NCBI GenBank assembly: GCA_965649825.1
Contig: OZ287699.1
Span: 620,001-684,000 of the forward strand
Reading direction: 5' to 3'
Length of the DNA stretch: 64,000 bases
Source of the DNA: Penicillus capitatus
Lineage: Eukaryota; Plantae; Chlorophyta
In this document: one piece after another, positions 16,376 to 42,961 of the stretch
How the letters are laid out: every line of letters starts with the position of its first letter
Position numbering within the stretch: position 1 is the stretch's first letter
Notes under the pieces: model-generated
Told to the model about the DNA's origin: nothing
Database searches by the model: none
What the model saw: the letters and a program-made list of their open reading frames with translations, nothing else
Position numbers and translations under genes: made by a program

Positions 16376-17713
16376 ATGACGACGACATCAGCGGCGGTGC
16401 TGTGTGTTCTCTGCTGTCTGGTGACGACGGCGGTTGGATTTTATACGGACACGAGTCCAGTGACGCTGTTAAAGGGGTCCAATTTCAAAACGCGGTTGCA
16501 GAAAGGTGGATATTGGATTGTGGAGTTCTATGCGCCCTGGTGCGGTCACTGTCAAAACCTGAAACCCGAATACGAGAAAGCGGCAAAGGCACTCGAAGGC
16601 GTTATCCATGTGGCGGCTGTAGATGCAGATTCGGAGAAGGGCTTGGCTCAGGAGTACAAGGTGCAGGGGTTTCCTACCATTAAACTGTTCTATCTATCAT
16701 CTAAAGGCAATCTCGCACATGCTGAGTACAAAGGCGGCCGTACAGCGAGTGATTTGATCAAATGGTCCATGGAACAAGTGACAAAACTGGCACTGAAGAG
16801 CATCGGTGTGAAGGGCGAGAAGAAACAGAAGGCATCTTCTGGCAATGCTGGATCTGGATTTTACGGAGAATCATCGGACGTTGTGAATCTGGGTGCCGCA
16901 GATTTCGATGAAAAGGTTCGAGGATCTGCAGATCTGTGGTTGGTGGAGTTCTATGCTCCCTGGTGCGGTCATTGCAAAAACCTGAAGCCCGAATGGGAAC
17001 AGGCAGCGACGAAGCTGAAAGGGAAGGTGCACGTGGGCGCCGTGGACTGTACGTCGCACGAATCGCTCTGCGGACAGTTCGGCGTTCAAGGCTTTCCGAC
17101 GATAAAGTTCTTCGGAACGCAAAAACAGGAACCCGAGGATTACAGTGGTGGCAGAGATGCTGCATCCATCGTTGCCTTTGCCACGACAAAGTGGTCGAAG
17201 ATGGCTCCTCCCCCGGAAGTGGTGGAACTGACGGAGACGTTCGTGTTAGAAAAGCACTGCACGGGGTCCGATGACGATCATGTTCCCAAACAGCTCTGTC
17301 TCATTGTCTTTCTCCCACACATCCTCGACAGTCGGGCCGAGGGACGCAAGGCCTATCTCAAGATTCTGCAAAAGGTGTCAGAGAATTACAAAGAGATGTC
17401 GTATGGGTATCTATGGGCAGAGGGAGGAAAGCAGAAAAGGGTGGAAGAAACCTTTGGAATTGGAGGGTTTGGATATCCGGCCGCTCTACTCTACAGTCCA
17501 AGGAAGAACGCTTACTCTGTTTTGAAAGCAGGACTGGATTACAAACACTGTGTCGAGTTCATCGACAGCCTAAGACACGGATTCGAGAAAGTGACTCAGA
17601 TAGATGGACCATTAGCGGACGCGGAGACAACCATCCCGTGGGATGGAAAAGACGCAACAGAAGAGCTGAAAGACGAATTCGACCTAGAAGACATAATGAA
17701 CGAAGAACTCTGA
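16376..17713 (+). CDS. PDIA6: Protein disulfide isomerase, PDIA6/PDIL2 type (a-a'-b), ER
   Basis: Signal peptide, two WCGHC thioredoxin motifs, C-terminal DEFDLEDIMNEEL. Confidence 0.93.
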   Translation: MTTTSAAVLCVLCCLVTTAVGFYTDTSPVTLLKGSNFKTRLQKGGYWIVEFYAPWCGHCQNLKPEYEKAAKALEGVIHVAAVDADSEKGLAQEYKVQGFPTIKLFYLSSKGNLAHAEYKGGRTASDLIKWSMEQVTKLALKSIGVKGEKKQKASSGNAGSGFYGESSDVVNLGAADFDEKVRGSADLWLVEFYAPWCGHCKNLKPEWEQAATKLKGKVHVGAVDCTSHESLCGQFGVQGFPTIKFFGTQKQEPEDYSGGRDAASIVAFATTKWSKMAPPPEVVELTETFVLEKHCTGSDDDHVPKQLCLIVFLPHILDSRAEGRKAYLKILQKVSENYKEMSYGYLWAEGGKQKRVEETFGIGGFGYPAALLYSPRKNAYSVLKAGLDYKHCVEFIDSLRHGFEKVTQIDGPLADAETTIPWDGKDATEELKDEFDLEDIMNEEL

Positions 17714-17810
17714 GATCTACAGGCAGTAGATATAATATCCCGATTTAAGCCCTTGGACTGGGATAGTGCTGTTGACAATGGTGATGATGATGACATCTTA
17801 AACTTTTGAA
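16898..17810 (+). repeat. Left copy of a ~0.91-kb direct duplication (PDI 3' half plus ~100 nt of 3' UTR)
   Basis: Matches 42046-42961 apart from 2 synonymous substitutions, a 2-nt UTR change and a 3-nt GAT indel seen by eye. Confidence 0.95.
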
Positions 17811-18209
17811 GTTCCGCAAACAAACAACTCATAGCTGCAACGTTGTCGCGCTGCGAACCACTGTATCTCTTAAGATAAAGGTTGTTTTTCTAGCGCCTGC
17901 TTAGAGCATGCTATTCATCGAGGAAGCCGTCAAATTCGGGACTCTTGACTAAACAAGGCCCTTCCACAACCTACAACTTGTACCTTTCCATCGCCTCTTC
18001 CGTTCTCTCGATAAGTTTCGAATATCAGCTATAGTCCAACAACGGTTATCGTAGAGATAAAAATTCTTAAATCCAGGAGGGGCGTCGCCAGAGGCATGTT
18101 GCCCTGGTTCTCCTGGTGACTGTCGTACATGGGCTTTTATTCAAATTGTTCTTTGGAATATTGTCGGAGAAAAGAACTCGATCTCCTGGTCACTTAACTC
18201 AGTCTACCC

Positions 18210-22153: not shown

Positions 22154-24443
22154 AGTTTACCCTCTTCATGTCCACTGCGGCAAGCGAGTGCGAGCGCCGG
22201 CCCAGATGAGAGATTAGCCGGAGACATCAAACCTGGTCGATTACGAGATGTGATTGGAAGCTCAGATTAAGCGTCGTCACAGACGTTCTAGTCGTTACGC
22301 TGGCTACCGTGTACAATGATGACGTGATCATCGGCGGAGAAATTCTGTCTGTACATGCTGCAACGTAGATGAAAGTCCTTGATCAGTTTAGACAAAGCAG
22401 AATTCAGATGAGTCGCTCGATGCGACCACATAGGCAGAATTTTGATTTATTCATGCCGTGGTGTCTGTGGTGGTATTTCGAGATTCGATTATGATGAGTT
22501 TGCGCTCTATCGAGCGTTCGAAGTTTGCACGGGAGCATGTGGGCGAATGGGTATTCGGTCAGTCATGACGTAACATCTGCCGCCCTACAAACGGGCGCAT
22601 GACATGTTTAATCATTCCGCTTCGCGCTTCCTGCGTAGACGCGCTGCGCGTCCGCCTCCGATCTCCGGCCTTGCTCGCGCCATCCCGTCCGCTGACGCCC
22701 CTTGGGTCTTCAACGTCACATCACGAATCTCCGCATAGATGAAGCAAACCTCAAAGAGACGGTTGATTCTGACACCTGTCCTTTTCCCTGTATTCGGCGG
22801 GTTGACGCAGCAAGCAGACCATTCCCATCTCCACCCGACATCAAACCCCTTGCGTTCACGCTCCATGTCGACGACGATCTTTCTAGACCGTAAGCGCAAA
22901 GAAAAGAAAAGAGGAAGAGAACGGCAGATAGCACAAGAAACATGTTAAAGAGAGCTGGCTGCGTTTAGAACGCCGTGCTGCTTAGAACATCAAATACGAC
23001 AAAAGCGTCAAAGATGCGATCGCTCAGCAAGATAACAACGATACCGTCACACAAGCTGTATACTTCGAGTGCGGTTCGATCGCGCCATGCTGTTTCTGTG
23101 CGCCTCGCGATTTTTTCGGCATCGATCACTCCTCTCAGCCTTCTCACGCAACCGACGCCAGTCGTCTTGCACAGCATCTGTCCATCCGGCCGAGCGCCGA
23201 ATAGGACTTCTGCCGGTGTCGCGCGCAAGCTAGCGAAGATCTATAAAACAACAAAATAACACCACTAAATTCTGCTCATTATACAAGAAACAAACGAACG
23301 AACATCAGCAGCGTTTCAGGGTAACAGTCTCTGATACTGCCGTAGTGTAAAGCAGTAGCCTAACGTGGCAGTCTGTGCACGTCCCGTGAAGGTAATGATG
23401 TCGCCACTGTCCTCATCAGGCTGACGAAAAGATTACCTAGTTCATACACCAAGTCTAAAGAAATGTGGAAACCAATCGACCAGAGTTTTCACATCGAGGA
23501 CCTATAGAGCAATGATCAGGAATCAAGGATTGATGACCACTTTTGCTGACGGCATTAAGAACAGCGAACAAAATCGAACGACATCTTGCAGAAAGAACTT
23601 CATGGCAGAGGCCCCCGACTAAGTGGCATGATCTTGAAACTGGCAGAGAGTATATTTCCTTAATCAGGTGAGATAGAGTGTTTTTTCGTGCCGACATGAC
23701 CTAAAAAAGCAGTGTGGGATGCAGAGGATGCTGTAGAGAGCGTCTTCAATGCGCAAGAAATTGTTGGCGCAAATGGCGACTTCTGTCGCAGCTGATCGAG
23801 TTCGAGATGGATCCGCAGGTGGTGTTTGGACGATTGCTCGATCTGTGACGCGAAATGATTATCGACGTCGTTGCAGCTCTCCATTTCAAACATTTACCAA
23901 TGCACCGTCTCGCATCACTGGAAGCTGAAGGACGCAGTTTTGCGCTTCATTATTCATGGACTCATGTTGACACGTCGATGGGTCACCGGCAAGAGAGTCG
24001 CATCTCTTATTAGGAGGTTGTACTTCACGTCCGATGACGAAAGCGATACTTGGCAGAAAACACAGCCACCATTTTCAAGCGACGCCGAAGAACATTCCCC
24101 TGACGAGACGGAAGAGGAAGATCTCTCCTTTTTTCAGGGGGGCTCGAGCTATGGTCGTCCTCTTCTATTCTCTCTTTAAGCACCAAATTCGACTTGCATT
24201 TAGAAACACCGCTCCGTGGGAACTCCAAGGAGGACCCTCTAAACATCGAGGACGTCGATGTCCCGTGGGTAGATGACTGGTATCGTACGCGCCAAGGATC
24301 CGCTCGAATTCATCTCTTGGGTCGCAAAACACAACTCTCAGTCGATCAAGTCCAGCGTAATGAACGATTGCAGAGATGAATGATGCACCACCTCTCACTT
24401 TCGAGCGGTTTTTGATGTAGGTCGAATTTCGAAGCTGCTTTCC

Positions 24444-24944
24444 GTGGCTCCTGGTCTGCAAAAATTCATGCCATTGTTGCATCCCGCACTTTTTTCATAC
24501 ATCCTCGGGAATTTTTCTCACAGCCTTGAGATCACGACCATGCTGAAATCGGAATTGCCTGCCATTGACTTGGGCATTGTCATATCTGGATTTCCCCGAG
24601 TTCTCACGTGGGGTATGATATCGCGTTTTTACCGTCGCCAAACGAACGGTGGTGTTTTAGATAAGAAACAGCTCTACGACTGTATGTGCTTCTTGGTTGT
24701 GCATTACAAAGGACGACTGGGCGCCGCCGAGGCATTAAACGCACATCCCTTGCGTTTCAAATTTACTCGTCAACTTTTGCCGGAGCTTTTTGTCGATCAG
24801 CAAAAAATTGAAGATGAAGAACGATATTCCAAGCCACCGCGCGTCTTTGGGCGCCTCTATCAGTTCAACAAGCATCTGAAAAGAAAGAACCCTCCACGGA
24901 GCACGATTATCTTCTTTGAAAATAGTCCAAGGCTGAGAGAATGA
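24444..24944 (+). CDS. Hypothetical protein, possibly the last exon of a spliced gene
   Basis: 166-aa ORF with protein-like composition; no family recognised. Confidence 0.3.
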   Translation: MAPGLQKFMPLLHPALFSYILGNFSHSLEITTMLKSELPAIDLGIVISGFPRVLTWGMISRFYRRQTNGGVLDKKQLYDCMCFLVVHYKGRLGAAEALNAHPLRFKFTRQLLPELFVDQQKIEDEERYSKPPRVFGRLYQFNKHLKRKNPPRSTIIFFENSPRLRE

Positions 24945-26122
24945 CAAGAATTTATTGCTCGACTTCACAGCCACATTATGGCCCATCGCCTTTGTTATTG
25001 AGTCTTGTGAAACAGAAACGAAATCAAAGAATTCAATGGCACATAGACCTTGCGGTTTTCATATTATCACACCGATCGCTCTATAACGCGTCAGTTCCAA
25101 TAACGTCCTCAGTTCGAAGTTGTTTAGAATCGGACGGTACATGCGCTGCCAGTGACTCTTCGAGGGAAATGTCTTAGACACACAGAGTCACACTTCGACT
25201 GTATAATGATGCAGAGTCTCCGAGACATCTCTCTCGCCTCGCCAGATTCGTAGCAGGAATATTCGTTCCGTTGACCATTCGACAGAAAGTTGCTCTGTTC
25301 CTTAGCTCATGCGATCCTCGCGAAATCGTCACGGATAGCGCTACACGTGCTATAGGCTGTTGAACTACAACCGACGTTGCATTTGACAGTTCTGTCTACA
25401 GATCCGTCGCACATTCGCGTTTTGAATCTGCATCTGCTTTTTCTGCGGAAGTTATTGCACCTGAAGATGACCGCACGTGAGGATTCTCCTACGAAGACTG
25501 TACCGTCCTAGGCAGAAAATAAGTTCTGCAAAATAACCTGTCGGCGCGTCGTACAACCTAGGATGTCTTCGCCGGTTGCATGGACGTTTTTTCTTAACCA
25601 TGCAGTTCTGCGAACCCGGCGGCTTTGTCGTCTAAACACAAGTGACTTCGAAAATACCTTTGTCAATCCTGCTTTCCAATACGAGTTTTTCCCTGTGCTT
25701 ACATCACATATCTCTTACATCGTGACTGGTTCGCCATGGCACTAGATACTGTTGTCGATACTAATTTGCTTTGTGTTTTGTAGCTTTTCAGACATCAGCC
25801 CGAGGGAAATGTTGGGTTTGGACGCACCGAGGGCGTTTCGGAACCTCATGGCGAACCACAGGGAACGACTGTTGTTGGGTCATCCGGGACCCAATAACAA
25901 GACAAGAGGAGATGAGTTTCACAGCAGCACCCATCAAACGAGCCTGATCCATCTATTAAACAATTTGGACAGGCTTGTCCTATAAATCGTGCAAAGCGCA
26001 ATGCCCTTTCTATCCAGAGAAGAGAAGATCTTGTTTTTAACATCGATATCAATGTCGATGTCGACGAAGAGGTAAGCATTAACATAGTCACACACATTAA
26101 CTAATTTCTTCAAGGTTTGTAT

Positions 26123-26266
26123 TGTGATCCCATCGCGATGAATTGTATTAAAAAACGAGGTTTGCAGCGTTTTGTTAAAAAGGGCGTTATTCACAGAATC
26201 TAGGATCTTTTGTATGAACAGGTCATTTCATCGTATCAATCAAATCACTGGATCCTCGGCTTGACA
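26123..26266 (-). repeat. 3' LTR of outer element
   Basis: Identical to 35564-35707. Confidence 0.97.
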
Positions 26267-28987
26267 ATCGCTTCCCTGCGCTTTACTCCGGCAGAAAAAA
26301 CGACGCAAGTGATCTCTATGGGCCAAAAAAGGCTTCCTTGATGAAGGCGAGACAAGATAATACAACTGAGGAGAAAATCGCCTCTGAACGATATAAGGTC
26401 CTTGCCACTGAGGTGCTAGTTTATTGCCATGCGTGTGGGCAAGCTGATTGTCAAACAACAGCACCTGTTGTCCCACTGCAAAATCACCAGATCTGCGATG
26501 TAAAGAATCTTGTTTGTTTTGCTGATGCTGCAATTGTGTATCGATAGCTGTCCAACGAGTCGCGAGAATATCTTCATGGCGCGTCGCATTAGGATCTTCA
26601 GAACTCGGAACCGAGACGGATGGTGATTGAACTGAATGTAGGCGTGGTTGGTAGCCAAAGGCCACCTGTACGGCACTGAGATGGGTTACGGAGTTCGGAT
26701 GAGAGTTCAGCAATGCTTGGATCCGTGGGAGGCAGGCTGCCCATTTTCCACTTGTTTGAAGACGCTGCAAGCGTCGGATGATCTCCTGATTAAGGCGTTC
26801 AACCGTTCCATTGCACTGAGGTCGGTATGCAGGGATTGTTCGTCGATTGATGCCGCGATCTGACATCCAATTGGATAGTTGATTTCCAACAAAGGCCGGT
26901 GCGTTATCTGTCTGCAGGCAATCAGGATTGCCAAAGAGTGATGTCCAGCGCTCGAGAAGCTTGATAATTGCCGCCGCGTTTGCCTTGGGCGACGCAGAAA
27001 TCAGACAGAAACGTGTGCAAAGGTCCACTGCTGCGATAATAAATCTCTGTGCTCCGTCTGGCTTCATTGGTCCAATGACATCCAAACCTACGCACTGGTT
27101 CATCTGCTGCCAGGTATTGAATGATTGCGTGACAGGAGGGTCATGTCGCGCAAAATGTTGACATCTTTCGCAACTTCGCACCCAATCTTGCACATGTGAT
27201 GGTGCGTCCGGGAAGTAGATCATCTTCTGCAGGTTCTGGAGGGTGGTTTGGACTCCATAATGTCCGCTCTGCTCATGTGCTCTGCGCAACCACTGAATGA
27301 TTTCACTCCTATCGAGGCAGCACGGTCGCCAATGTATTCCATCGGCAGAGTATTCCATCTTGTTTGCCCGCAGACGAAAAGAACTGCTCCGATGCTTGAT
27401 ACGCGCTCTCTGTTGCGGTGTCGCTTCTTCGAGACATCTCCCAGTTCTCAGATAATCTTCCATTTGCAGATACCATTCCGGCCATTCTTTACTGATCTTG
27501 GCTGCCACCACCTTCGATTCTTCTGCTTTCGAATCCTTTAGCTCTCTCCTCCACCACGGACTCCTGCTGAGTAAGTCGGCCACGATGTTGGCCACTCCGT
27601 CGACGTGCTGCACTCTGCCTGCAGCCAGATTTAGCACGTCCAAATGCTTCTGCACCAAAAAGCTCTGGTCTTTGGTGCCGCTGGCCTGCTTGACAACAGT
27701 CGCGTCTGTAAAGATTGTCAACCGCCTGCCCATGATTAGATGTCTCACTTCCTTCAATGCCCTTTCCATCCCGAGCAGCTCTGCCTTTCCACTTGAATGA
27801 AACTTTTCTCTCTGAAAGCCTCCAGCCCCGAGCCGCATCAATTGTTTCGTTTCTCTGCTGAAGAGAGCGTATCCGAATCCGTCTCTGCTCGCGTCGACGT
27901 AAAGATCGACAGAGATGCCGGATGCATCAGGTCGGTTGTACCACAAGCGGCTCATTGTCTTGATGATAATACTCCAACGATCAGGATCTTCTTGCCAGTA
28001 GTTTCCGATCGTCACTGCGTCAGCGTTGCACAATTTCTGCAAAGCTGCCAGACTTCTGACGTCGCATCGACAGTAGCGCAGTAATGCTCGAATCACCCCC
28101 AGACAAGAACGAACTTCAGTCCGAGTCTGTGGAGGTCTTGCCGAGAGCAGCTTCTGCAACGTCCCCTCGGGTGGGAGAACTCCCTGTGGCGAGAATCTGT
28201 GTCCCAGAAATTCGATCTCCTCGACATCATACAAGCATTTCTTAGGGGATATCGTCCATCCGTACTTCCTGTAAGTCAGCAGCAGACCGTACACTGCCTT
28301 TCCCAAATCTTGCCTGGTACGTGCCCCAATGCAGACATCATCAGCATAACTCTCGATGGCAACGTGAACGCCATTTCTCTTCATCTGGTCACGGGCTTCT
28401 GAAATCGTCATCTGAACTGCAGTATCAAAAAAAGCCATTGAATTGATCCACCCCATTGGCAATCTTGCAAACGAATAGGGTTGTTTGTCAAATACAGTCA
28501 CGAAATAAGGCTGTAAATCAACAGCCAACGGGATTTGATAAAACCCGTGTCGAAAATCAAATTTTGCAAAGTACTTCATACCGGACAGATTCTGCACCGC
28601 GCCTTCTCGATTCATTGGCAAAGCAGGGCTTCTCGCAGTCAGCTTGTTCATGCCTCTAAAATCAAGGACCACTCGACGCTCGAGCGAATCCTTCTTCTCG
28701 ACCGAAAACCATGGGATAAGATGCTTCGGTTTCCCATTGAATCTCTTGACAATCCCGGCATTTATGAGCTGATCGATCTCTCTCCGGCAAGCCGCAGTCT
28801 CGGCAGCAAAAACGTAAGGGATCTTCGTGTAGACGGAGTGAAGCTTCCCTCTGACGTCCTTCAAACTGACCTCCCATCCCGAAAAACGTCCAACTCCATC
28901 ACGGATGACGTCCGGGAATCGTGCCAGTAGCTGTTCTAGGCTGCAGCAGTCAATTGGATCATTCTGCGACAGTAGTCCTGACTGCAA
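26240..28987 (-). CDS. pol: Outer element Pol (RT-RNase H-integrase) in the -1 frame relative to gag-pro
   Basis: AKFDFRHGFYQI, RLPMGWINS, YADD, LYVDASRDGFG, H-H..CERC zinc finger, GLDVIGP, DNAPAF, NGTVERLN, WQGPY; frame open from the TGA at 29129-29131. Confidence 0.95.
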   Translation of the reverse strand: MQSGLLSQNDPIDCCSLEQLLARFPDVIRDGVGRFSGWEVSLKDVRGKLHSVYTKIPYVFAAETAACRREIDQLINAGIVKRFNGKPKHLIPWFSVEKKDSLERRVVLDFRGMNKLTARSPALPMNREGAVQNLSGMKYFAKFDFRHGFYQIPLAVDLQPYFVTVFDKQPYSFARLPMGWINSMAFFDTAVQMTISEARDQMKRNGVHVAIESYADDVCIGARTRQDLGKAVYGLLLTYRKYGWTISPKKCLYDVEEIEFLGHRFSPQGVLPPEGTLQKLLSARPPQTRTEVRSCLGVIRALLRYCRCDVRSLAALQKLCNADAVTIGNYWQEDPDRWSIIIKTMSRLWYNRPDASGISVDLYVDASRDGFGYALFSRETKQLMRLGAGGFQREKFHSSGKAELLGMERALKEVRHLIMGRRLTIFTDATVVKQASGTKDQSFLVQKHLDVLNLAAGRVQHVDGVANIVADLLSRSPWWRRELKDSKAEESKVVAAKISKEWPEWYLQMEDYLRTGRCLEEATPQQRARIKHRSSSFRLRANKMEYSADGIHWRPCCLDRSEIIQWLRRAHEQSGHYGVQTTLQNLQKMIYFPDAPSHVQDWVRSCERCQHFARHDPPVTQSFNTWQQMNQCVGLDVIGPMKPDGAQRFIIAAVDLCTRFCLISASPKANAAAIIKLLERWTSLFGNPDCLQTDNAPAFVGNQLSNWMSDRGINRRTIPAYRPQCNGTVERLNQEIIRRLQRLQTSGKWAACLPRIQALLNSHPNSVTHLSAVQVAFGYQPRLHSVQSPSVSVPSSEDPNATRHEDILATRWTAIDTQLQHQQNKQDSLHRRSGDFAVGQQVLLFDNQLAHTHGNKLAPQWQGPYIVQRRFSPQLYYLVSPSSRKPFLAHRDHLRRFFCRSKAQGSDCQAEDPVI
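26269..26281 (-). other. Polypurine tract of outer element, GCGCAGGGAAGCG
   Basis: 2 nt before the 3' LTR; identical to inner PPT. Confidence 0.85.
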
Positions 28988-28989
28988 GT

Positions 28990-30750: not shown

Positions 30751-30901
30751 TGTGCTATTTTCACTGCGAACGCGAAAATCGCGGCGAAACACAAAACCCT
30801 ATCGAAACTTTTTTAAAAGGGACGCTCTGTCGTTTTTCGCGACAATTTATCTTCTATCATTATGTCCCATCCGTCTCTGTCGCGAGCGTCTGTCGCTCAC
30901 A
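30751..30901 (-). repeat. 3' LTR of inner element
   Basis: Identical to 35371-35521. Confidence 0.97.
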
Positions 30902-33900
30902 CGCTTCCCTGCGCCAATACTTCACTAAGTCGTCGCCATGCACTACTTGGCTTCTTCCATTCTTAGAAACCAAGTATCGTCGGGAGGAGAGGCGAGCGGT
31001 GATGACGTGCGGACCGCTCCACCAGGGATCCAGTTTGCGACGTCCCTTGTGAAGGTAAATCAACACCTCGGATCCGATCTCTAACGGCATCTGGCGCCTC
31101 CCTTGTCGACGGCTATTTCGATATGCCCTCTGTTGTCGCGTACGAACCACAGCTTGTTGTCGGGCTTTATCCAATGCCATACCCGGATCCCCTTCCGACT
31201 GTCCCAATCCGAACATAAGCTCTTTCGGCCTATATCCAGTCACGGAATGTTTTGTAGTGTTGTATATACCCACAGCTTCGGAAATCGAACGGCGCCAGGG
31301 CGAGTCGCTCGTGCTCATCATTCTCCTTATCCTACGTAGAATGGTCTGGATCGCACGTTCCACTAGTCCGTTCGAAGCTTGGTGATGAGGGGCGGCCATC
31401 ACATGTCGAATCTGATTTCTGCCACAGAAATTATTGAATTCGCTCGAACGCAGCGCGGCTCCAGCATCTGATATGATCGTTTCCGGAGTCGAATGTCGAT
31501 TGATCCAATGTCGAACGAGCTTCATCACGGATCGGATGCTAGTGTCCGGCACATTCACTGTTTCTACGAAACGGGTTAATCCGTCAATCGCCACCCCGAC
31601 GTATCCTCCAGCGCTTCGGCTTTGTGCCGGGAACGGTCCCATAAAATCGATCCCCACGACTTGAGCGGGGCGAATGGCTTCAACGGAACCAAATGACTCC
31701 TGTGGGACTCGCTTCTGCCACTTCTGGCAAGCATCACAAGACTTGAGAATAGTCCTAATGTCCTTGAACATTCCCTTGTATGACTTCCCTCGCCGGCGAA
31801 GCTCATCCGCGACTGCGGCGGGTCCTACATGGCCTCGGTTGTGTACGTCCTCAATGAACCTTCTGCGCTCTAGTGTCAATGTCGGTATCTTTTCCGTCGG
31901 GACCTCGGGGGAATCGATCGCGTGTATCCTTCGTTGGAGATAGGTGGATCGTGACAGAAGGTCCGCAGCAGTGTTCTCAACGCCTGGGATGAACTTGACA
32001 CTCGGGTTAAACTGCAAAATCTGATCCAGTCTGCGGAGGACAATCGGGCTGCAATTGTCAGGAGACATGGCGCGAAAGGCTGCCCAGTTGTCGGTGTATA
32101 CCTCGACGGGGCAGTGTGCGATGTAGCCCTCAAACGCACGGAGGGCTAGCAAGATAGCGTCGATTTCTGCCTCGCTGGAATGTGCCCAAGTCTTTGACGA
32201 AGACTTGCTGAACATCGCCACAGGTTTGTCATCCGATAAAAGAACAGCCCCATACCCCGTTGAGCTAGCATCAGAAATCACGGTCCACTTCCCATTCTTT
32301 TGGGGGAAGCTAAGCACATGCCACTCAGTCTGGGTCCTCTCTATTACTTCATTCCACACTTTGCGAAACTCTTCTGTTCTGAAGGCATCCGGAGGCTTTC
32401 CTTGATACTGTCGCAGCGGGGCGACGATGGCATGCTGATGACCTTGGAATCTGACCAGTTGGTTCAACAGACCAAACACGACCCGCAACTCTTTTGTATT
32501 GTTCGGTATACAGAGGTCTGAGAGCTTTTTAATGAGGCCCGAGGATGGTCGGATGCCGTCGCGCCCGATCTCAATCCCGAGGAACTCGACAGCCGGACGT
32601 TTTAAACGGATTTTCTGCGGGTTGCAACACCATCCGTGAGCCGATAAGGCCTGAAAAATCACCCCCAACGCAGTATCATGAGATTCCTCGGTCTGGGTAC
32701 CCAGTAATATGTCGTCAACATAGGCTCGAATCACTGCATCCGGAGGCAACTTTGGAGCTATTTCGGCCATCGTCATGTTGAGAGCCGTCGTAAAATGCGT
32801 CCCCGAATGAATCCAACCGAACGGTACTCGCTTAAATCTGTACCATTGACCTTGCAGCTCGAAACCGAAATACTGTCGAATTGACTCATCGAGAGGTATC
32901 TGCATATATCCCTTCGCCAGGTCAATTGTACTCCAAACCCCTCGTTCAGGTATTGATTCGATTGTCTTCATTCTGTCTAAAGCGTTGGCTTGTAGTGCGA
33001 GCGAAGCTGCATTCAATAGACGAAAATCATGGACCAAACGGGACTTCCCGTTTGGGGACGTCACTATGATCATCGGGGTGACAACTGTTGGCCGGGTCTT
33101 GACCGTCTCGATAACGTCTAGGTCAAGGAGATCTCTTACCATCGGTCGCATTTTGTCACACTCTGCTTGCGAATGAAATCTCAGCTTAAGTCGGCTCCAA
33201 TCGACATTTTCGCGCAATCCTGCATCTGTGACTGCATAGTGGGTCGTCAATCCGACGCCGTCGCGAAGCACCTCCGGAAACTTCTTCTGCAGCTCTTCCA
33301 TGACCGTACAGGTGGCAATAACCGCCCGCTTTGCTGGGCGATTGCGTTCAATGGGAACTATCTCTCCTGACACTCGGTGTAGGAACACTGACGTCTCTTG
33401 GGGGACTAGAAAGCCGACGGCTCCGTTCTTTGCTCCCAGTTGCTGGGGTTCGCTTGAAAGATTGATGAAATGAACTTTCAAAGGTACCCCTCGCTGTCTC
33501 GTGGCTCCGATGACGGCTATTCCGGCCGGCAGATTTCCGGAACCCGATAGGAGCACCTCTCCGTTCATGACACTATATGGCAACTGCACTGTCGTCATGT
33601 CCATCGGCTTGAGCACTAACGATCGGCCGAGGGGTAAGAAAACAGCGTTTTCCCGTCGGAATGGCTTTGCCGTCCTAGTCTCATCTTCCCGTATCACCAG
33701 ATCATTTTTGTCAGGTCGTCTTTGTCGATCTTCGGATTCCACGTCGACTTGACTCTTAACCGCAGAGCATGGAATAAGTTCCCCATTCTCAATGCGTAAT
33801 GCATCGGATACACAGTCAATGATGGCACCAAATGCAGTGAGAGTTGGTTTCCCAATCAAAGGCTGCGATGCTGAGGATGAGACTTCAAATTGCACCTTTC

Positions 33901-35371
33901 TAGTCTCACGGCCGATCGTAGTCCATAAGTCCGTCACACCCGATGTCCTCTCCACTTGACCATTGAAGGCTTGGAGAGACTTTGCTCCGGAGGGATCGAC
34001 GGGCCACCCTTGCTTTCGAACCAAGCGCAAAGGTATCACACTGCGAGCAGCGCCAGTATCGACCAGCATCCGCGTCTTCCTTTGAGTATCCCGGGTTTGA
34101 CCAAGATTGACGGTGAGATGCAAGAGTGGGAGCCCCTCTTCAACGGCAGAACTCTTCATCATCGCCGCATTAGTCGCCGTATGCGTCGAAGGCATGGTAT
34201 ACTCAGAACCACTCTTCTCCTTACAATCGCGTTTACGATGTCCGTATTTTCCGCATCTAAAACAATGTCCGTGAAACTGCTTTGCTTTGCCGGCAGTATC
34301 GTCCATCTTCTTCGTCATGTTCACAACTTCGCCCTCGCGTTCTTGATACGCTGGATCTTCGGGATCGACCAGATCTGCGTTGTACGGATCGACCACGGAA
34401 TCTTCCTCCTGTCCGATGTGCCCGATGTGATGCCTGTGACCTGATCTTGGTCTCTTCACATTACTCCACGTGTGGTATCGAGTTGCTAAAGCTTGTAGTT
34501 CTTCGAAATCGAGGAGATTGTAATCCGCGTTGTTCCTGAGGTAGCTTACGAACTCTGGTTCGAGCTTCGCCATCACCACATTCATGGCGCGCCTCATGCT
34601 CACTCCTTCACACTGTCCGAAATAGACGACTCTGCAACGGTTGACAAAGGCCAAGGCCGATTCGGTCTCCCCGCGGCGCAACTCAACCAAGTATTGCACG
34701 CGGTCTGGCACGTCCTCCACTCCCCCATGCAGACGCTCCAAGCGCGCGGCTACAGCCTTCCACATCTCCTCACCGCGCGATGCAACGTCAGCTCTTGCTC
34801 CCTTTGTGTTAGGAGGTAAGGGGCCACCTCCTGTATATGCCACACAGACCGAACGAATATCGGCGGTCACTGAGTCGCCAAATGGCGTCGTCTCATCGAA
34901 ATGCGCTGTCAAGGCTCTAACCCGTTGAAATGGGTCCACTATCTCAAATTCCAGCTTCGCGATAGTCTGCCGATGTGTTCGGACTGTCCATTCGCTCAAT
35001 CGTCGGTTCCTACCGACGCGGCGCTCTGAATCATAAGGCCATGGCTGCGATAGTGCAAGCGCGACTCCATCTTCACGATTACAGGTCGCCGGCTCGGAAG
35101 ATAAATCTTTCCGTCTCCATCTCCATATAACAAGCAGTGCGCCTCCGATGGAGAGGCTAGTCATAACCGTCAAAGCGCTAAACACCCAAAGCAGCCATTT
35201 TGCGTTCGCCCAACGAGACGACATAAATTCTTCGTCCTCATCGACCGGGCAGTAGTCTTCGTCGCCGCCTTTAGGACTATCGGCCGGCTCCCAGAGCCAA
35301 CCGACGAAGAGTCTCCCGAGGGTAGTGGCCACTAGAGTGGCCACTACAGTTACAACTCGCTCCGAAACCAT
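30860..35371 (-). CDS. Inner element single-ORF Gag-Pol polyprotein (1503 aa)
   Basis: N-terminal hydrophobic segments, CFRCGKYGHRKRDC knuckle, LVDTGA protease, YVDD RT, ISDASSTG RNase H, H..H..C..C, GIDFMGP, SNGLVER, WWSGPH integrase. Confidence 0.97.
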   Translation of the reverse strand: MVSERVVTVVATLVATTLGRLFVGWLWEPADSPKGGDEDYCPVDEDEEFMSSRWANAKWLLWVFSALTVMTSLSIGGALLVIWRWRRKDLSSEPATCNREDGVALALSQPWPYDSERRVGRNRRLSEWTVRTHRQTIAKLEFEIVDPFQRVRALTAHFDETTPFGDSVTADIRSVCVAYTGGGPLPPNTKGARADVASRGEEMWKAVAARLERLHGGVEDVPDRVQYLVELRRGETESALAFVNRCRVVYFGQCEGVSMRRAMNVVMAKLEPEFVSYLRNNADYNLLDFEELQALATRYHTWSNVKRPRSGHRHHIGHIGQEEDSVVDPYNADLVDPEDPAYQEREGEVVNMTKKMDDTAGKAKQFHGHCFRCGKYGHRKRDCKEKSGSEYTMPSTHTATNAAMMKSSAVEEGLPLLHLTVNLGQTRDTQRKTRMLVDTGAARSVIPLRLVRKQGWPVDPSGAKSLQAFNGQVERTSGVTDLWTTIGRETRKVQFEVSSSASQPLIGKPTLTAFGAIIDCVSDALRIENGELIPCSAVKSQVDVESEDRQRRPDKNDLVIREDETRTAKPFRRENAVFLPLGRSLVLKPMDMTTVQLPYSVMNGEVLLSGSGNLPAGIAVIGATRQRGVPLKVHFINLSSEPQQLGAKNGAVGFLVPQETSVFLHRVSGEIVPIERNRPAKRAVIATCTVMEELQKKFPEVLRDGVGLTTHYAVTDAGLRENVDWSRLKLRFHSQAECDKMRPMVRDLLDLDVIETVKTRPTVVTPMIIVTSPNGKSRLVHDFRLLNAASLALQANALDRMKTIESIPERGVWSTIDLAKGYMQIPLDESIRQYFGFELQGQWYRFKRVPFGWIHSGTHFTTALNMTMAEIAPKLPPDAVIRAYVDDILLGTQTEESHDTALGVIFQALSAHGWCCNPQKIRLKRPAVEFLGIEIGRDGIRPSSGLIKKLSDLCIPNNTKELRVVFGLLNQLVRFQGHQHAIVAPLRQYQGKPPDAFRTEEFRKVWNEVIERTQTEWHVLSFPQKNGKWTVISDASSTGYGAVLLSDDKPVAMFSKSSSKTWAHSSEAEIDAILLALRAFEGYIAHCPVEVYTDNWAAFRAMSPDNCSPIVLRRLDQILQFNPSVKFIPGVENTAADLLSRSTYLQRRIHAIDSPEVPTEKIPTLTLERRRFIEDVHNRGHVGPAAVADELRRRGKSYKGMFKDIRTILKSCDACQKWQKRVPQESFGSVEAIRPAQVVGIDFMGPFPAQSRSAGGYVGVAIDGLTRFVETVNVPDTSIRSVMKLVRHWINRHSTPETIISDAGAALRSSEFNNFCGRNQIRHVMAAPHHQASNGLVERAIQTILRRIRRMMSTSDSPWRRSISEAVGIYNTTKHSVTGYRPKELMFGLGQSEGDPGMALDKARQQAVVRTRQQRAYRNSRRQGRRQMPLEIGSEVLIYLHKGRRKLDPWWSGPHVITARLSSRRYLVSKNGRSQVVHGDDLVKYWRREACERQTLATETDGT
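35358..35370 (-). other. Primer-binding site of inner element, TGGTTTCGGAGCG
   Basis: Directly follows the 5' LTR and begins TGG (complement of tRNA CCA). Confidence 0.9.
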
Positions 35372-35521
35372 GTGCTATTTTCACTGCGAACGCGAAAATC
35401 GCGGCGAAACACAAAACCCTATCGAAACTTTTTTAAAAGGGACGCTCTGTCGTTTTTCGCGACAATTTATCTTCTATCATTATGTCCCATCCGTCTCTGT
35501 CGCGAGCGTCTGTCGCTCACA
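35371..35521 (-). repeat. 5' LTR of inner element
   Basis: Identical to 30751-30901. Confidence 0.97.
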
Positions 35522-35548
35522 GCTTCCCTGTCTAGTTTCGAGGTGAGA

Positions 35549-35561
35549 CGCTCCGAAACCA
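35549..35561 (-). other. Primer-binding site of outer element, TGGTTTCGGAGCG
   Basis: 2 nt after the 5' LTR; identical to inner PBS. Confidence 0.9.
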
Positions 35562-35563
35562 AT

Positions 35564-35707
35564 TGTGATCCCATCGCGATGAATTGTATTAAAAAACGAG
35601 GTTTGCAGCGTTTTGTTAAAAAGGGCGTTATTCACAGAATCTAGGATCTTTTGTATGAACAGGTCATTTCATCGTATCAATCAAATCACTGGATCCTCGG
35701 CTTGACA
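35564..35707 (-). repeat. 5' LTR of outer element
   Basis: Identical to 26123-26266. Confidence 0.97.
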
Positions 35708-35819
35708 GTATCCTTGTGGAACTAGCAGGCAGGGCCTTAGCTTTATTCCTACTTTTCCTGATCGCGCACATGAGGCAGACGGGTGTGCACTGCCGATGAA
35801 AGGGGGTAGGTGTGACTCT

Positions 35820-36309: not shown

Positions 36310-37297
36310 AGTCTGGTCGACGAAGCAGTGACGAACGAGCGTGCGTGGCGAAAGAGCGAGGTGGCCGATCGCAGGCGACAAGCGCTACGAAGTCGTGACG
36401 AATCCGCCTACCGTCAAGAACGTGAGCCAGGCCTGTCCGCGTTTCGTCTCCCATTTCTCCATTCCAGTTGCTGCTGAACGAGAGGCCGATCGCCGGACAC
36501 CCTGTCTTCTCGCTCTGTAAAGTGCGCCGCGTTCGTTTCCGGACTGCTGCCGACCTGCGTCTTGCGCAGCTCGAATTCGCCGACGAATCTGCCTGTCTGT
36601 GGCAGTGGTTCACCAGGACATCGAAAAGTTGCTCGCCGCAGCCGCGCAGTCGGGGAAGAGATCACGTTCTGTTCACAGGAACGTCGTGGACGAAGTTGGA
36701 AGCCGCCACAGAGAGGGTCTACACTTCGGCACCGCCAGACGTGGGTCGATTACTGGGAGTCGAGTGCACGCCGGTCGCCCGAGACGTCGAAGAAGAAGGA
36801 GCAGAAGGAGCGTCTGTCCACGGCGAGTCGCGTTTCGCCGAACAGGGTTCGTTTTCCCCTCGCTGGGTACCGACGCACGTACCGTTCGCCGCAGGTCCCG
36901 TGGCTCCCGGAAGGGAGAAGGCGTCCGGAGACGGCCGACACGAGCTGACGCCTCGGACACTCGAATCCCCGTCCTTCCGCGTGGTCACCTACAACGTCCT
37001 CGCTGACTCCTACGTTTCGAGGCCGAACGCGAAGAGCGTTTTCGGATACTGCAGCCCCAGGCGCGTCTACGCCTCCTGTCTTCTGAAACTGACCCGAGCG
37101 TTCTGCCAGCGATCTCGACATCGACGTGCGGAAGCAGCTTGTGCTCAACTTCTCGGCTACCACGCAGATATTGTCTGCTTGCAGGAGTGCGACCAGAAAG
37201 CCTTCGACACCTACTACTGTCCCCACCTCCAGGCCGAAGGTCACGTCAACGGAAGGGTATCTCTCTCCCATCTATCGTCTCTGTAGGATTTGCCCCC
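36310..37297 (+). pseudogene. Truncated, frameshifted PDE12/CCR4-like (EEP) phosphodiesterase fragment retaining introns
   Basis: VDEAVTNERAW, YEVVTNPPTVK, IAGHPV, FRVVTYNVLADSY, DLDIDVRKQLVL, LGYHADIVCLQE; apparent frameshifts near 36363 and 37148; homology stops ~37297 with no GDFN/SDH motifs. Confidence 0.75.
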
Positions 37298-39029
37298 GCG
37301 ACCGAACGGCATCGACTCGGAACTGTCCAGAACGCGCGTCATGGGCGGCGTGGACTCGACAATGGGATCTGGTGCTGCTGTTCTCTGGACTGCTAGGGGG
37401 CTCGGGGACGCGTGGCATGGGACGGTTGGCGTCTGAATCGACAGATGCAGCGAAGGATGAAGCCTCTGGGAGAATCCAGTGTAAGCCATGCAGGTAACGA
37501 ACTGTCCCCGGCGCGATGGACAAGGGACATTTCAGAAGAGGACAGTGCATTGGGCACCGCATCGTGATCTGACGGTTGACGGACCGCCATGGTAGATGCA
37601 GAGGGTCGCCGTTCATTTTTTAGAACCCCGTTTTTCGATATCGCTATGGACGAGATGATTGGTCGTCCGTTTTGCGTCCAACCGGTTCAGACGACGATTA
37701 CGATGATTCCCCGGATGCAAAATATCCTGTCGCCGGAAACGAGGCCAAGCAAAAAAGGGCAGAGCGCCAAGGTATGTGTTCGCAGGCAAAACGTAAAACG
37801 ACTTGCGTTTCTCTAACGCCGCCCTTAGGTCAAAAGCCACCCAAGAGAAAGACGATTCGCGTTGCGCAGGTGGCGCTTTAGAACAGAAGCCGAGACAACG
37901 AACTTCATCAAGGCCAACGGGTATAACACGACAGGTCAGCAAGAAGCTGCGTCGTTCGATGTTTTTCAAAACGTGTTTTTCGGCAGTGCTACGGGAGCAT
38001 CTGACTCAGGCGGGATTCAATACGACGTGCTGTCACAAGAGAGCATAGAGACGCGAAGCTTTCGGGCGGAGGTCGGTTTGAATGGCGCCCGTCTCAGAAC
38101 TGGATATATACGGTACGAGCTTTGTCATGGATGGCATTCTGGCAAAGGTGTTGTGTGCTGAGTAGACTCTGGACGAGTGCGTTTGTCGCTCAACAACAGC
38201 CTGGGTTCGAATGTGATGAGTATGTGGTGGCTGTGCTGCGCCTTCTGGGTCATCAGCTCGAAGGATGGCCAGAGCTCGTGCGTCGTATGTACGAGAAACT
38301 GCAAGAGCTCGATCTTCGTGCTGTTTTGAGCCCGTCGCGTCGGAGATTGAGTGAACATTTTGGTATTTTGCCGAACACAGCAATGGAAACACCGGCGGGC
38401 ATTACTTCGAGTGGACACACAGGGGGACCTTCAGTGCTGGCGAGCAGCAGACGTCCTGATCAGGACTACCGCAACAGTGGATGGATATTGACGGCCCAGA
38501 AGCTCTCGATGGTTTGATGAGAAGCTACGCCGGCGCCGATCGACACGCCATCGTCAACAGCGACGACGCGCCTGTAGCAGGAGACGATGAACATGATGAC
38601 GATATAGACAAGACGCCACTGGAAAACGGCGACGGGGACGGCGACGAGGAAGATACGCTGTTGCCTCTCCTAATCGACGATGATGATGACCGCGATCTGC
38701 CGCTACTTGGACGGGGCGGAGTCGACGGTGGTAGGGATGGAGCTGTCGTCGGAGTCTCTGCCTTCAGATCGACTCTCCAATCGCCCAGATGGGTCCACTC
38801 AACCTTGTCCTGTTAAGTAAGTCATCCGACGAATTCCTCCGCCCAACTAATCGCCATCTGCCTGCAGGACCAGCTTCCCCCAGTGGGGAGCTGGCGCCCG
38901 GGACACTTCAACGGCATTAGGGGGGTGTGAAACCAGTGCCGAGGGGCGCCTGCGTTGTCCAAGTACCGGAAGCTGTAGGTCGGTACTCTGCGGGCAAGCG
39001 TAGCAAGGCGAGCCCTGCCTGCGGCCTTT

Positions 39030-39739: not shown

Positions 39740-41250
39740 GCAGCTTATGATGAAGACGACAGCAGAAGACAAGCTGGATCATTTGACAGCCGATGATGAA
39801 GATGAAGACGATAAACTACGATCGCGCCGCCAGCAGTCCACGATCGGCCACAGATCTGACATCCGACAGCTGCGATGAACACGATAAAGTACGATCGAGC
39901 CTGCAGAGCATCTGATCGATCGATCGATCGATCGGATCCGACATCCGAAGACGACTAACTATGATCAAGCTCCGGCAGCAACCGATCGAGCCTTATATTT
40001 GACATCCGACAGCTGCGATGAACACGATAAACTACGATCGAGCCTGCAGAGCATCTGATCGATCGATCGATCGGATCCGACATCCGAAGACGACTAACTA
40101 TGATCAAGCTCCTGCAGCAACCGATCGAGCCTTATATTTGACATCCGACAGCTACGATGAAGACGATAAACTACGATCGCGCCTACAGAGCATCCGATCG
40201 ATCGGATCCGACATCCGAAGACGACTAACTATAATCGGGCTCCGGCAGCAACCGATCAAACCTTACATTTGACATTCGACAGCTACGATGAAGACGATAA
40301 ACAACGATCGAGCCTACAGCATCATACGATCGATCTGATTCGACATCTGACATCCGACAGTCTACGATCAAGCCTCTAGGCAGACATCATATGATCTGAG
40401 ATCCGATAGCCCATCGATAAAGACGACAACCCATGATGAAGGATCTGGCAACAGACATCCTATGATCCGAAATTCGGCAGCAGATAACTAATATGATCTG
40501 ACATCTGACGGCAATGATGAAGACGACGGCCTCTGATCTGGAATCCGACAGCCATTGATGAAGCCTGCAACAGTCTATGATGAAGTCTCCGGTAGACAGC
40601 CTATATGATGAAGACGACAACCTATGATGAAGACGACAACCTATGATCTGGAATCTGACAGTCTATGATGAAGACGACAATGTACCATGAAGCCTCCAGC
40701 AGACAGTCTTATGATCCGACATCCGATGGTCTACGATGAATCCGACAATCTATAAGGATGAACAACCGACGATGAAGCCTCCAGCAGCCTCTGATCGGAC
40801 ATTCGACGGCATATGATGAAGACGACATCCTAGATCTGGAATCTGACGGCGTATGATGAAGACAAAAAGCCTACGATCAGGCCTCTAGCAGCAGACATCT
40901 TATATGATCTGAGATCCGAAAAAACTAAGACGAAGACGACAGCCTACAATAAAGCCTCCAGCAGACAGCATATACGATCTGGAATCTGACAGCCATTGAT
41001 GAAGCGTGCAACAGTCTGTGATGGAGCTTCTGACAGCAGAACACTTATATGATCTGGAGTTCGACAACCACTGATGAAGAGGATAAACTACAATGAAGCC
41101 TTTAGCAGCCTCTGATCTAAAATCTGACGGTGTTCGATGAAGACAACAACCGACGATGAAGCAAGCCTCCAGCAGCAGGCAACTTATGATTTGACATCCG
41201 GCAGTCTATGATAAAGAAAGCAGCAGAAAGCCTATTATCAGCCTACAGCA
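39740..41250 (+). repeat. Degenerate tandem-repeat array; core units 143, 139 and 131 bp starting at 39858, 40001 and 40140
   Basis: Unit gacatccgacagct(g/a)cgatgaa(c/g)acgataaa...(gatc)n...cctta(t/c)attt; flanks decay into shorter gatgaagacgac/gacatccgacag subrepeats. Confidence 0.9.
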
Positions 41251-42045
41251 CCATATAATTCCTGATTTGACAGCAGCAGCAGACAGCCTTTTCTAATGCC
41301 GATCGCGTACATTTCAGTTGTTGTGTGATATTCTTAATTACTTCTAGACGAATAATCATATGGCGTTTCTGCATTTCTCTGTGCCAGTTTTTATCTTTTG
41401 AGCATTCAAAATGTTGGACTTGTGTCAACTGGATTTTACAACTTTGATAATGTCGTGCTGAATCGATCACATTCTGCCCGTTAAGCTTCGCTTGCCGACG
41501 GAGTTGCCGGTCTGCCGCGCATCGAGAGCGACAACAACGGAAGGCTTAACAAGTGTTCGGAGCAAGGTGTTTTGCAAGGTACAGATCTTCATTTAATACT
41601 CGCATGGCAAGGTGACTTTCGAGGCAGATGTGTTTAGCAGCCCGCTAGAACCAGAGAAAAGCGCCCGTTTGGAAAATCAAAAGTCCATTCAACCAAACAG
41701 TGAACACACTTTGACGCACTTGATCCTTGTCCAACAAGACAGTCTTGTCGATTAGGGAAACCATGGCGACAGACCGCAAGTCCCTTTTACACAAACTTAC
41801 ACTTCCTCGCTATTCCTTTGCAGACCACAATGCACCGCTATTCTACACTGTCTGGTTATATATTACATTTTTTTCGATAGTGCCACTTGTAAAGACTTCT
41901 CAATTAATCAATAACCAATGTTCATTCAAGCATCTTTTCGCGTGAGGTACCACGTAAGAGCAAGCGCTGAGTAGACGATACCTGACGATTGCTTAGGTGC
42001 AACGAAAAGCAAAAGGAGGAACCCGTTTTTTAGCAGACGATCCGA

Positions 42046-42961
42046 GCAGATTTCGATGAAAAGGTTCGAGGATCTGCAGATCTGTGGTTGGTGGAGTTCT
42101 ATGCTCCCTGGTGCGGTCATTGCAAAAACCTGAAGCCCGAATGGGAACAGGCAGCGACGAAGCTGAAAGGGAAGGTGCACGTGGGCGCCGTGGACTGTAC
42201 GTCACACGAATCGCTCTGCGGACAGTTCGGCGTTCAAGGCTTTCCGACGATAAAGTTCTTCGGAACGCAAAAACAGGAACCCGAGGATTACAGTGGTGGC
42301 AGAGATGCTGCATCCATCGTTGCCTTTGCCACGACAAAGTGGTCGAAGATGGCTCCTCCCCCGGAGGTGGTGGAACTGACGGAGACGTTCGTGTTAGAAA
42401 AGCACTGCACGGGGTCCGATGACGATCATGTTCCCAAACAGCTCTGTCTCATTGTCTTTCTCCCACACATCCTCGACAGTCGGGCCGAGGGACGCAAGGC
42501 CTATCTCAAGATTCTGCAAAAGGTGTCAGAGAATTACAAAGAGATGTCGTATGGGTATCTATGGGCAGAGGGAGGAAAGCAGAAAAGGGTGGAAGAAACC
42601 TTTGGAATTGGAGGGTTTGGATATCCGGCCGCTCTACTCTACAGTCCAAGGAAGAACGCTTACTCTGTTTTGAAAGCAGGACTGGATTACAAACACTGTG
42701 TCGAGTTCATCGACAGCCTAAGACACGGATTCGAGAAAGTGACTCAGATAGATGGACCATTAGCGGACGCGGAGACAACCATCCCGTGGGATGGAAAAGA
42801 CGCAACAGAAGAGCTGAAAGACGAATTCGACCTAGAAGACATAATGAACGAAGAACTCTGAGATCTACAGGCAGTAGATATAATATCCCGATGCAAGCCC
42901 TTGGACTGGGATAGTGCTGTTGACAATGGTGATGATGATGATGACATCTTAAACTTTTGAA
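42046..42961 (+). pseudogene. 5'-truncated duplicate of the PDI gene (second thioredoxin domain to 3' UTR)
   Basis: Encoded protein identical to the C-terminal part of 16376-17713; lacks ATG, signal peptide and first CGHC domain. Confidence 0.9.

Follow-up and report, generated by a model that had tools for sequence, protein, structure and literature searches.

An old partial duplication of a protein disulfide-isomerase gene, homogenised by gene conversion, around a spacer of transposons, satellites and one conserved gene

Two nearly identical copies of the 3' half of a protein disulfide-isomerase (PDI) gene, lying in direct orientation on both sides of a transposon-rich stretch of 24.2 kb, raise the question of whether a mobile island has recently entered this chromosome or whether the repeats are older than they look. 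The locus lies in a window of 64,000 nucleotides from Penicillus capitatus (contig OZ287699.1, positions 620,001 to 684,000; the coordinates below are those of the window), which matches part of contig ctg340523_41x_l (1.58 Mb) of the ENA metagenome assembly ERZ25074695. An earlier note on this DNA had proposed an accessory island, acquired with a long target duplication and liable to be excised by recombination between the repeats. The comparison with other haplotypes and with a sister species leads to another answer. With a probability of about three in four, the locus results from an old partial duplication of the PDI gene, recurrent gene conversion between the two copies, and the accretion of transposons and satellites around a conserved gene, rather than from a recent excisable island.

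The repeat itself is found with the boundaries and geometry that had been described. Self-BLAST and MAFFT alignment give one long direct repeat pair in the window, 16898-17810 against 42046-42961. Of the 916 aligned columns, 4 are mismatched, and a (TGA)n run contains an indel of 3 nt, for an identity of 99.24% (E = 0). On the left, the copy (16898-17810, plus strand) is part of an intact PDI-A6-like gene without intron (16325-17713, plus strand), and comprises its codons 192-462 with 97 nt 3' of the stop. The open reading frame (ORF) of this gene, 462 codons long, encodes two thioredoxin domains with CGHC active sites (Pfam Thioredoxin x2, E = 1e-59) and a C-terminal NEEL, and its homologues are annotated as protein disulfide-isomerase A6. 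The right copy (42046-42961, plus strand) is a start-less 3' fragment: an in-frame TAG is located five codons upstream of its junction and no ATG precedes the active site. It lies 125 nt from the ORF of a convergent ubiquitin carboxyl-terminal hydrolase (USP; 43087-44796, minus strand; Pfam UCH), the two stops being 225 nt apart as previously reported. The coding differences between the copies, 17056 G/A and 17218 A/G, are indeed both third-position and synonymous, and the remaining two substitutions and the indel are all found in the 3' untranslated region (UTR).

The loci used for comparison were obtained by exact-protein look-ups. A contig of the same sample, ctg336034_22x (58.6 kb; L002 + L003), is the alternative haplotig; it is ~98.5% identical to the window and collinear with it from 12761 to 52835. 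A second sample, ERZ26696514, provided two haplotype contig sets, relA (L004 + L007) and relB (L005, L008), of a sister species; they are about 87% identical to the window, and the species is ~12% diverged, with a dS of about 0.2-0.6. The sampled haplotypes are therefore 4, from 2 samples and 2 species. For three more distant relatives (L006, L089 and L090), alignment with the PDI of the window gives a protein identity of 65-70%, and a search for closer relatives in the JGI metagenomes returned a best match of only 47% identity. The organism is intron-poor and plastid-bearing: tocopherol cyclase is encoded in the vicinity, and the PDI clusters with sequences adjacent to those of green algae.

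How old is the duplication? The alternative haplotig holds both PDI copies and the spacer, without the interval 26123-35707 and some satellite DNA. In the sister species, a full PDI gene is followed 11.2 kb downstream by a partial copy adjoining USP, and the repeat boundaries of the two species agree within 1 nt (query 574/575-1486). At the left junction, the BLASTN match between window 16000-18023 and relA 9670-11703 runs 213 nt beyond the left copy, so that the first 213 nt of the spacer (17811-18023) are orthologous to the sequence after PDI in the sister species. At the right junction, the match between window 42011-44000 and relA 22694-24680 begins 35 nt before the right copy; these last 35 nt of the spacer (42011-42045), which contain the in-frame TAG, are orthologous as well. 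The outer flanks can likewise be aligned between the species at both junctions, and the 125 nt separating the right copy from USP are 87% conserved. The duplication thus arose once, before the window species and the sister species separated; with the same boundaries and orthologous junction flanks in both, it is old and fixed in everything sampled. A recent acquisition does not agree with the same duplication, with orthologous junctions, in a species ~12% diverged, and the supposed presence/absence polymorphism of the island is not seen, both copies and the spacer being present in 4/4 haplotypes. The arrangement that the earlier note had singled out as contrary to its own view, PDI followed in relatives by the sequence at 17.8-19 kb, was observed for the first 213 nt only.

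The 99.2% identity of the copies reflects recurrent interlocus gene conversion and not recency, the pattern being one of concerted evolution. Over the 913-nt core, the left and right copies differ by 4 mismatches in the window haplotype and by 1 in the alternative haplotig, while the allelic copies of the two haplotypes differ by 9-12. The left and right copies of the sister species differ by 68, and any between-species pair by 104-110. Of the biallelic sites, 63 group both copies by species (pattern 111100), 6 set both copies of the window haplotype apart from all else (pattern 110000), and 0 separate left copies from right copies (pattern 101010). Eight sites sort by haplotype in both copies; at 6/8 only the window haplotype is distinct from all else, as would result from changes that arose on it and were then spread by conversion over a tract of at least ~550 nt. 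In the sister species, the 68 mismatches contrast with the ~109 expected without exchange, and unequal rates cannot account for this deficit since the PDI protein distances to the outgroups are equal for the two species. Selection is not the source of the near-identity either, because synonymous sites and the 3' UTR are included and the sister-species copy is broken. The two copies clearly pair and recombine, and only non-crossover products are recorded.

The same interlocus-conversion pattern is described in two reports on human segmental duplications (PMC3790853, PMC4467073). As in such pairs, the cis paralogues are closer within a chromosome than the orthologues between species, homology ends sharply at the duplication boundaries, and lineage-specific variants are common to both copies. 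The gene/pseudogene pairs CYP21A2/CYP21A1P and GBA/GBAP1 also show this behavior. Unlike the known pairs, the duplicate is here only 0.9 kb long, 5'-truncated and located in an intron-poor, alga-like eukaryote, and the evidence for the pattern comes only from metagenome assemblies, which cover two haplotypes in each of two species. The locus provides a clean natural example of conversion between a gene and a 0.9-kb fragment of it, across 12-25 kb and over a time exceeding the lifetime of a species, and a test case for conversion-detection methods. It is well explained by known processes and constitutes a new example of interlocus conversion, without opening a new question.

As a separate observation, the two haplotigs of the window species differ at 1/1191 nt in the neighboring PDK gene and at 14/1389 nt in PDI. 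The idea that conversion from the fragment had raised the allelic divergence of PDI was considered and found no support, the unduplicated 5' half differing at 5/573 nt and the duplicated half at 9/816 nt.

Another possibility is an assembly artefact, in which two PDI alleles, or a collapsed or expanded repeat, would have been joined in tandem. The organism is apparently diploid and its sequence comes from a metagenome assembly, with contigs at 41x and 22x, which speaks for such an error. Each of the two haplotigs nevertheless contains both copies with their own unique flanks, haplotype-specific single-nucleotide variants are common to both copies within a haplotig, and an independent assembly, from a second sample and another species, shows this architecture again, with a right copy that is a diverged pseudogene and cannot be an allele. 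An artefact is, in these conditions, hardly credible.

A second explanation for the near-identity is that the right copy is functional and kept by selection, either as the exon of a chimeric gene encoding a single-thioredoxin protein of the endoplasmic reticulum or as a 3'-end/terminator module of USP. Its frame of 271 codons is open in both haplotypes of the window species, a possible acceptor site is found 15 nt upstream, and the 125 nt leading to USP show the 87% conservation given above. In the sister species, however, the right copy is a decayed pseudogene: it carries a premature stop and frameshifts, and its active site is changed from CGHC to RGHY, both cysteines being destroyed, even if its 3' coding half still has species-specific substitutions in common with the functional gene. 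The identity with the parent moreover reaches synonymous sites and the UTR, which is not explained by selection on a protein, and the copy has no start codon and an in-frame stop just upstream. A functional right copy is for these reasons very unlikely.

What does the spacer contain, and is it a unit? The interval 17811-42045 measures 24.2 kb in the window, and the spacers of two other haplotypes measure 13.8 and 11.2 kb; that of the fourth contains a large satellite array and a LINE (long interspersed nuclear element)-like insertion. Between the species, the alignment covers only ~1.5 kb of the 24.2 kb, namely 23840-25114 (81% identity) and the junction-proximal pieces. The present-day island is mostly a later, lineage-specific accretion that was not inherited as a unit. 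Pfam searches with the stop-to-stop ORFs of at least 70 amino acids gave no match in the spacer apart from the retrotransposons and the PDE12-like fragment described below, and no island-level recombinase or transposase was found, the only integrases being those of these nested elements, which have their own target-site duplications (TSDs). The two spacer ends share no match longer than 9 nt, direct or inverted, and no terminal inverted repeats (TIRs) or att-like ends; inverted repeats of at least 100 nt are absent from the window. With ~1.5 of 24.2 kb in common between species and neither recombinase, TIRs nor att-like ends, an island moving as a unit, as had been imagined, is not supported.

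The earlier note had listed only transposons, satellites, gene fragments and unassigned ORFs between the repeats. All of these are there, but "only" was wrong. A conserved spliced gene occupies 23964-24944 (plus strand; exons 23964-24153, 24204-24356, 24421-24612 and 24661-24944; 272 codons). Its three GT-AG introns are 50, 64 and 48 nt long, against 50, 62 and 49 nt in the sister species, and once they are removed the ORF is unbroken in the window, in the alternative haplotig and in the sister species, with no difference in length. Compared with the sister species, dN is 0.080 and dS 0.552 (dN/dS 0.14), and the substitutions in its largest ORF are distributed 27/17/53 over the three codon positions, a third-position bias with p = 2e-5. 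This gene is under purifying selection, and a dispensable, accessory nature of the spacer is not supported. Four homologues of its product were found among 1.84 billion representative proteins; in L091, the gene is located beside FAM210-like and aconitase-like ORFs and not beside PDI or USP. The product has no Pfam match and no PDB sequence match, and a single-sequence AlphaFold model was unusable (pLDDT 37). Its arginine-rich N-terminus resembles a targeting peptide. The gene is missed by ORF scanning: the 48-nt intron, a multiple of three without in-frame stop, reads through as ORF. The locus is in this respect a natural example of a lineage-restricted gene hidden among unassigned ORFs by introns of 48-64 nt, which is of practical value for the annotation of this clade, with its short introns and active Ty3/gypsy elements.

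These results permit an evaluation of the proposal that the spacer is a recent and dispensable accessory island, which came with a long target duplication and segregates by loop-out between the repeats. The geometry certainly allows it. The 913-nt repeats are direct, the right copy has the stop and the 3' UTR, and a crossover would restore the order PDK-PDI-USP with an intact PDI next to USP, as had been pointed out. An island-less PDK-PDI-USP exists in a distant relative, the only such arrangement found, and conversion proves that the copies pair and recombine. The situation is also like that of known substrates of non-allelic homologous recombination (loop-out deletion, solo-LTR formation), with direct repeats of ~1 kb, more than 99% identical and 14-25 kb apart; crossing over between them would remove the spacer, and a single copy, hybrid in sequence, would remain. 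Unlike in these systems, no deletion product is present in the sampled haplotypes, conversion alone being recorded, and the spacer has a constrained gene which would select against deletion: as 23964-24944 lies in the spacer, a loop-out would remove it, and selection on this gene presumably prevents the fixation of such a deletion. The duplication predates the ~12% species split with orthologous junctions, the 4/4 occupied haplotypes are accompanied by no full-length PDI directly adjoining USP in the 90% cluster, and a spacer with a gene at dN/dS 0.14, whose content is not kept as a unit and which has no recombinase of its own and no defined termini, is not what the proposal predicts. It is altogether quite improbable.

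A further comparison is with bacterial integrative islands, which target tRNA genes or gene 3' ends and bring with them a duplicate of the target's 3' end. Here too the target gene is intact through a duplicated 3' end, and direct repeats bracket the island. Unlike such islands, the spacer has no island integrase and no short att sites, its repeat is 913 nt long, the host is a eukaryote, the content is not kept as a unit and no empty/occupied polymorphism is observed. The locus serves as a warning when genomes are scanned: direct repeats that are almost identical and enclose a region rich in transposons mimic a recent mobile insertion, and here the comparison between species reveals an old and fixed structure, with repeats that conversion makes look young.

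A presence/absence polymorphism does exist inside the spacer, and only one was seen: a heterozygous insertion of two related, nested Ty3/gypsy long terminal repeat (LTR) retrotransposons. The outer element (26123-35707, minus strand) has identical LTRs of 144 nt (26123-26266 and 35564-35707) and a GTAT TSD (26119-26122 and 35708-35711); its ORFs at 28990-30792 and 26240-28987 contain protease (PR), reverse transcriptase (RT), RNase H (RH) and integrase (INT) domains recognized by Pfam. It is absent from the alternative haplotig, which shows the exact empty site TTTGTAT|CCTTG. The inner element (30751-35521, minus strand), inserted in the leader region of the outer one, has identical LTRs of 151 nt (30751-30901 and 35371-35521), a GCTTC TSD and one gag-pol ORF of 1503 amino acids (30860-35371). 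Both have a TGG-starting primer-binding site, a purine tract, LTRs in TG...CA and the order gag-PR-RT-RH-INT. This nested pair is very young. The identity of the LTRs in each element, and the absence of both from the alternative haplotig, show that this genome has undergone retrotransposition very recently, and probably still does.

The other lineage-specific components are more modest. A PDE12/CCR4-like 5' gene fragment (36468-37286, plus strand; Pfam PDE12-like_N, and Exo_endo_phos over model positions 14-54 of 225) encodes the N-terminal domain and the first ~40 residues of the endonuclease/exonuclease/phosphatase (EEP) nuclease domain only; it is present in the alternative haplotig and absent from the sister species. 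A three-frame Pfam search of 37000-38700 revealed no further EEP nuclease piece in any forward frame, and homology searches with the ORF gave distant N-terminal matches only. A satellite with a period of 139 nt and a sub-period of 73 nt (39801-40372; TRF) differs in copy number between the haplotigs, and BLAST shows that the alternative haplotig is without 40647-41206. The density of mismatches between the haplotigs, computed per kb, is 1.3-2.8% over most of the spacer, 0.5% at the conserved gene and 0-0.9% in the flanking genes. The locus is in sum a natural example of an intergenic insertion site still accreting transposons and satellites.

Some additional details of the spacers deserve mention. 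At 38000-38999 of the window, the mismatch between haplotigs drops to 0.6%, against ~2.3% on either side; this segment, which is absent from the spacer of the sister species, overlaps the ORFs 38122-38517 and 38481-38816, the latter encoding a very acidic product, and may be another constrained element or a matter of chance. The sister-species spacer contains its own satellite, with a period of ~157 nt (L005 12300-21200, L004 12300-15850), which in one haplotype forms a many-kilobase array where the contig ends. A LINE-like RT insertion (RVT_1 + zf-RVT) is found at L008 13668-15392 and missing from relA. A Lipase_3-like fragment is present in the spacer of the sister species and not in that of the window.

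What preceded the duplication? In L090, whose PDI is ~70% identical to that of the window, PDK (minus strand) and PDI (plus strand) are followed, 514 nt after the PDI stop, by the C-terminus of a convergent USP at the contig end, with no island and no second PDI piece. The USP piece consists of the last 15 codons (FLSYTRVSDWDWVMT, followed by the stop), 12/15 identical to the USP of L006 and stopping at the same place. In a neighbor-joining (NJ) tree of the PDI proteins, L090 falls outside the window lineage, L006 and L089 in 182/200 bootstraps. In L006 and L089, PDI is followed by RNase T and not by USP, and in L006 (1-21338), compared with window 6300-47800, the block that extends from tocopherol cyclase over the RAP-like gene and PDK as far as PDI lies inverted between its flanks. 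The order PDK-PDI-USP is provisionally regarded as probably ancestral, the inversion being derived elsewhere. The ancestral order PDK-PDI-USP-IleRS previously put forward is accordingly supported by L090 for its first three genes, but L006 and L089 differ and the tree is that of a single gene. As a side observation, L089 (1-3917) contains two tandem RNase T paralogues. It can also be remarked that the PDI|USP junction that received the insertion in the window lineage is an inversion breakpoint in another lineage.

On this basis, the following history is proposed for the old duplication. In the common ancestor of the window species and its sister, DNA would have entered the short interval that separated PDI from the convergent USP gene. 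It would have included at least the ~1.3-kb segment of the spliced gene, which sits elsewhere in L091, and the same event would have placed a second copy of the last 913 nt of PDI next to USP. Insertion and duplication were presumably one event, and the second copy is start-less and a pseudogene fragment. In direct orientation and 12-25 kb from its parent, it would have recombined with it repeatedly without crossover, conversion presumably overwriting the fragment and probably sometimes the gene, which would keep the two copies of a chromosome at an identity of 99-100%. Conversion would have been rarer in the sister lineage, where the fragment would have decayed. Thereafter, each lineage and haplotype would have lengthened and renewed its spacer on its own, by retrotransposon insertion, satellite expansion and gene-fragment capture. 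The entry of an island with a long target duplication, as stated in the earlier note, fits this history in a limited, ancient sense, but not the present-day island, mostly accreted later.

By default, we favor for this origin a duplication-insertion at the DNA level, through staggered breaks with fill-in or template switching. Duplications at breakpoints are known to arise by staggered breaks with fill-in or by replicative template switching (fork stalling and template switching, FoSTeS; microhomology-mediated break-induced replication, MMBIR), and such duplications at Drosophila inversion breakpoints have reportedly been described by Ranz et al. in 2007. Similarly, a flanking piece of several hundred nucleotides is duplicated here on both sides of newly joined DNA, at a site which is a synteny breakpoint relative to two other lineages. 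Unlike in staggered-break inversions, where inverted copies are found at opposite block ends, the copies are direct. The staggered-break inversion model was itself rejected: it predicts an inverted PDI fragment beside RNase T, and none is there. The right copy was also considered as the remnant of a whole-gene duplicate, and no decayed second PDI was found in the spacer; TBLASTN with PDI residues 1-195 and sensitive BLASTN with the 5' half and promoter against the spacer detected only thioredoxin-domain paralogy.

An RNA-mediated origin has to be weighed at this point, under two forms: either (a) an insertion had split PDI, the right copy being its original exon 2 and the left 3' half a cDNA patch that made the gene continuous again, or (b) PDI mRNA gave rise to the right copy as a 5'-truncated retrocopy. 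The end of the repeat, 97 nt beyond the stop, would be plausible as the 3' end of an mRNA where convergent genes have their stops 225 nt apart. A-rich sequence comes after each copy (AAACAAAGAA; CAAACAAACAAC), and the start of the repeat coincides with the limit of the second thioredoxin domain. In both species, CAG stands immediately before the right copy, and in the window species a T-run 15 nt upstream adds to the resemblance to an acceptor site; these genomes contain LINE-like and LTR reverse transcriptases. On the other hand, the junctions show only a short A-rich stretch, with neither a clear poly(A) tail nor a TSD, no relative has an intron at this point of PDI, and the introns known here measure 48-64 nt and not kilobases. 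It is improbable that a retrocopy should land 12 kb away from the parent gene, oriented like it and precisely beside the ancestral neighbor, and the evidence amounts to a few nucleotides per junction. This origin is thus unlikely. A more specific scenario appears rather improbable, slightly more so than the RNA-mediated origin as a whole. In this RNA-templated rescue, an insert would have split PDI where the second thioredoxin domain begins, and the gene would have survived through splicing of the insert. A partial cDNA would later have recombined into exon 1 and made the gene continuous again, and exon 2, now the right copy, would have been left stranded by USP and kept similar by conversion ever since. 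The CAG before the right copy in both species, the end of the repeat at a plausible mRNA terminus and the A-rich stretch behind the left copy agree with this scenario, without being proof.

Several points weigh against the preferred history of an old duplication maintained by conversion. The polarity of the gene order is deduced from an NJ tree of one protein and from a USP match of 15 residues at a contig end, and in two relatives RNase T comes after PDI. Neither microhomology nor a poly(A) tail, a TSD or element termini could be recognized at the junctions. The right copy being open in both haplotypes of the window species, it could formally have a function, and with 4 haplotypes from 2 samples a rare deletion allele could have escaped sampling. 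Finally, all the sequences are metagenome assemblies, in which polishing errors inside repeats are conceivable; such errors would not, even so, produce haplotype-specific variants common to both copies.

Around the locus, the housekeeping genes announced on both sides were recovered with Pfam: a PDK-like kinase and PDI on the left, USP and an isoleucyl-tRNA synthetase (IleRS) on the right. The latter (44721-47789, minus strand; Pfam tRNA-synt_1, Anticodon_1 and zf-FPG_IleRS) is of the bacterial/organellar type. The RAP-like ORF and the PDK ORF (13303-16179) are convergent with ends only 72 nt apart, which confirms the very tight convergent spacing in this genome. No Rfam family reaches its gathering score in the window and no tRNA was found. 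Compared with the ENA stretch L001, the window shows 2 base differences in 21,389 nt, at 11505 (T/A) and 11550 (C/T), both in the tocopherol cyclase region. Further downstream, an imperfect tandem array of 36 nt (12 codons) at 61240-61533 lies inside the ORF 60910-61761 (plus strand), which presumably encodes a repeat protein.

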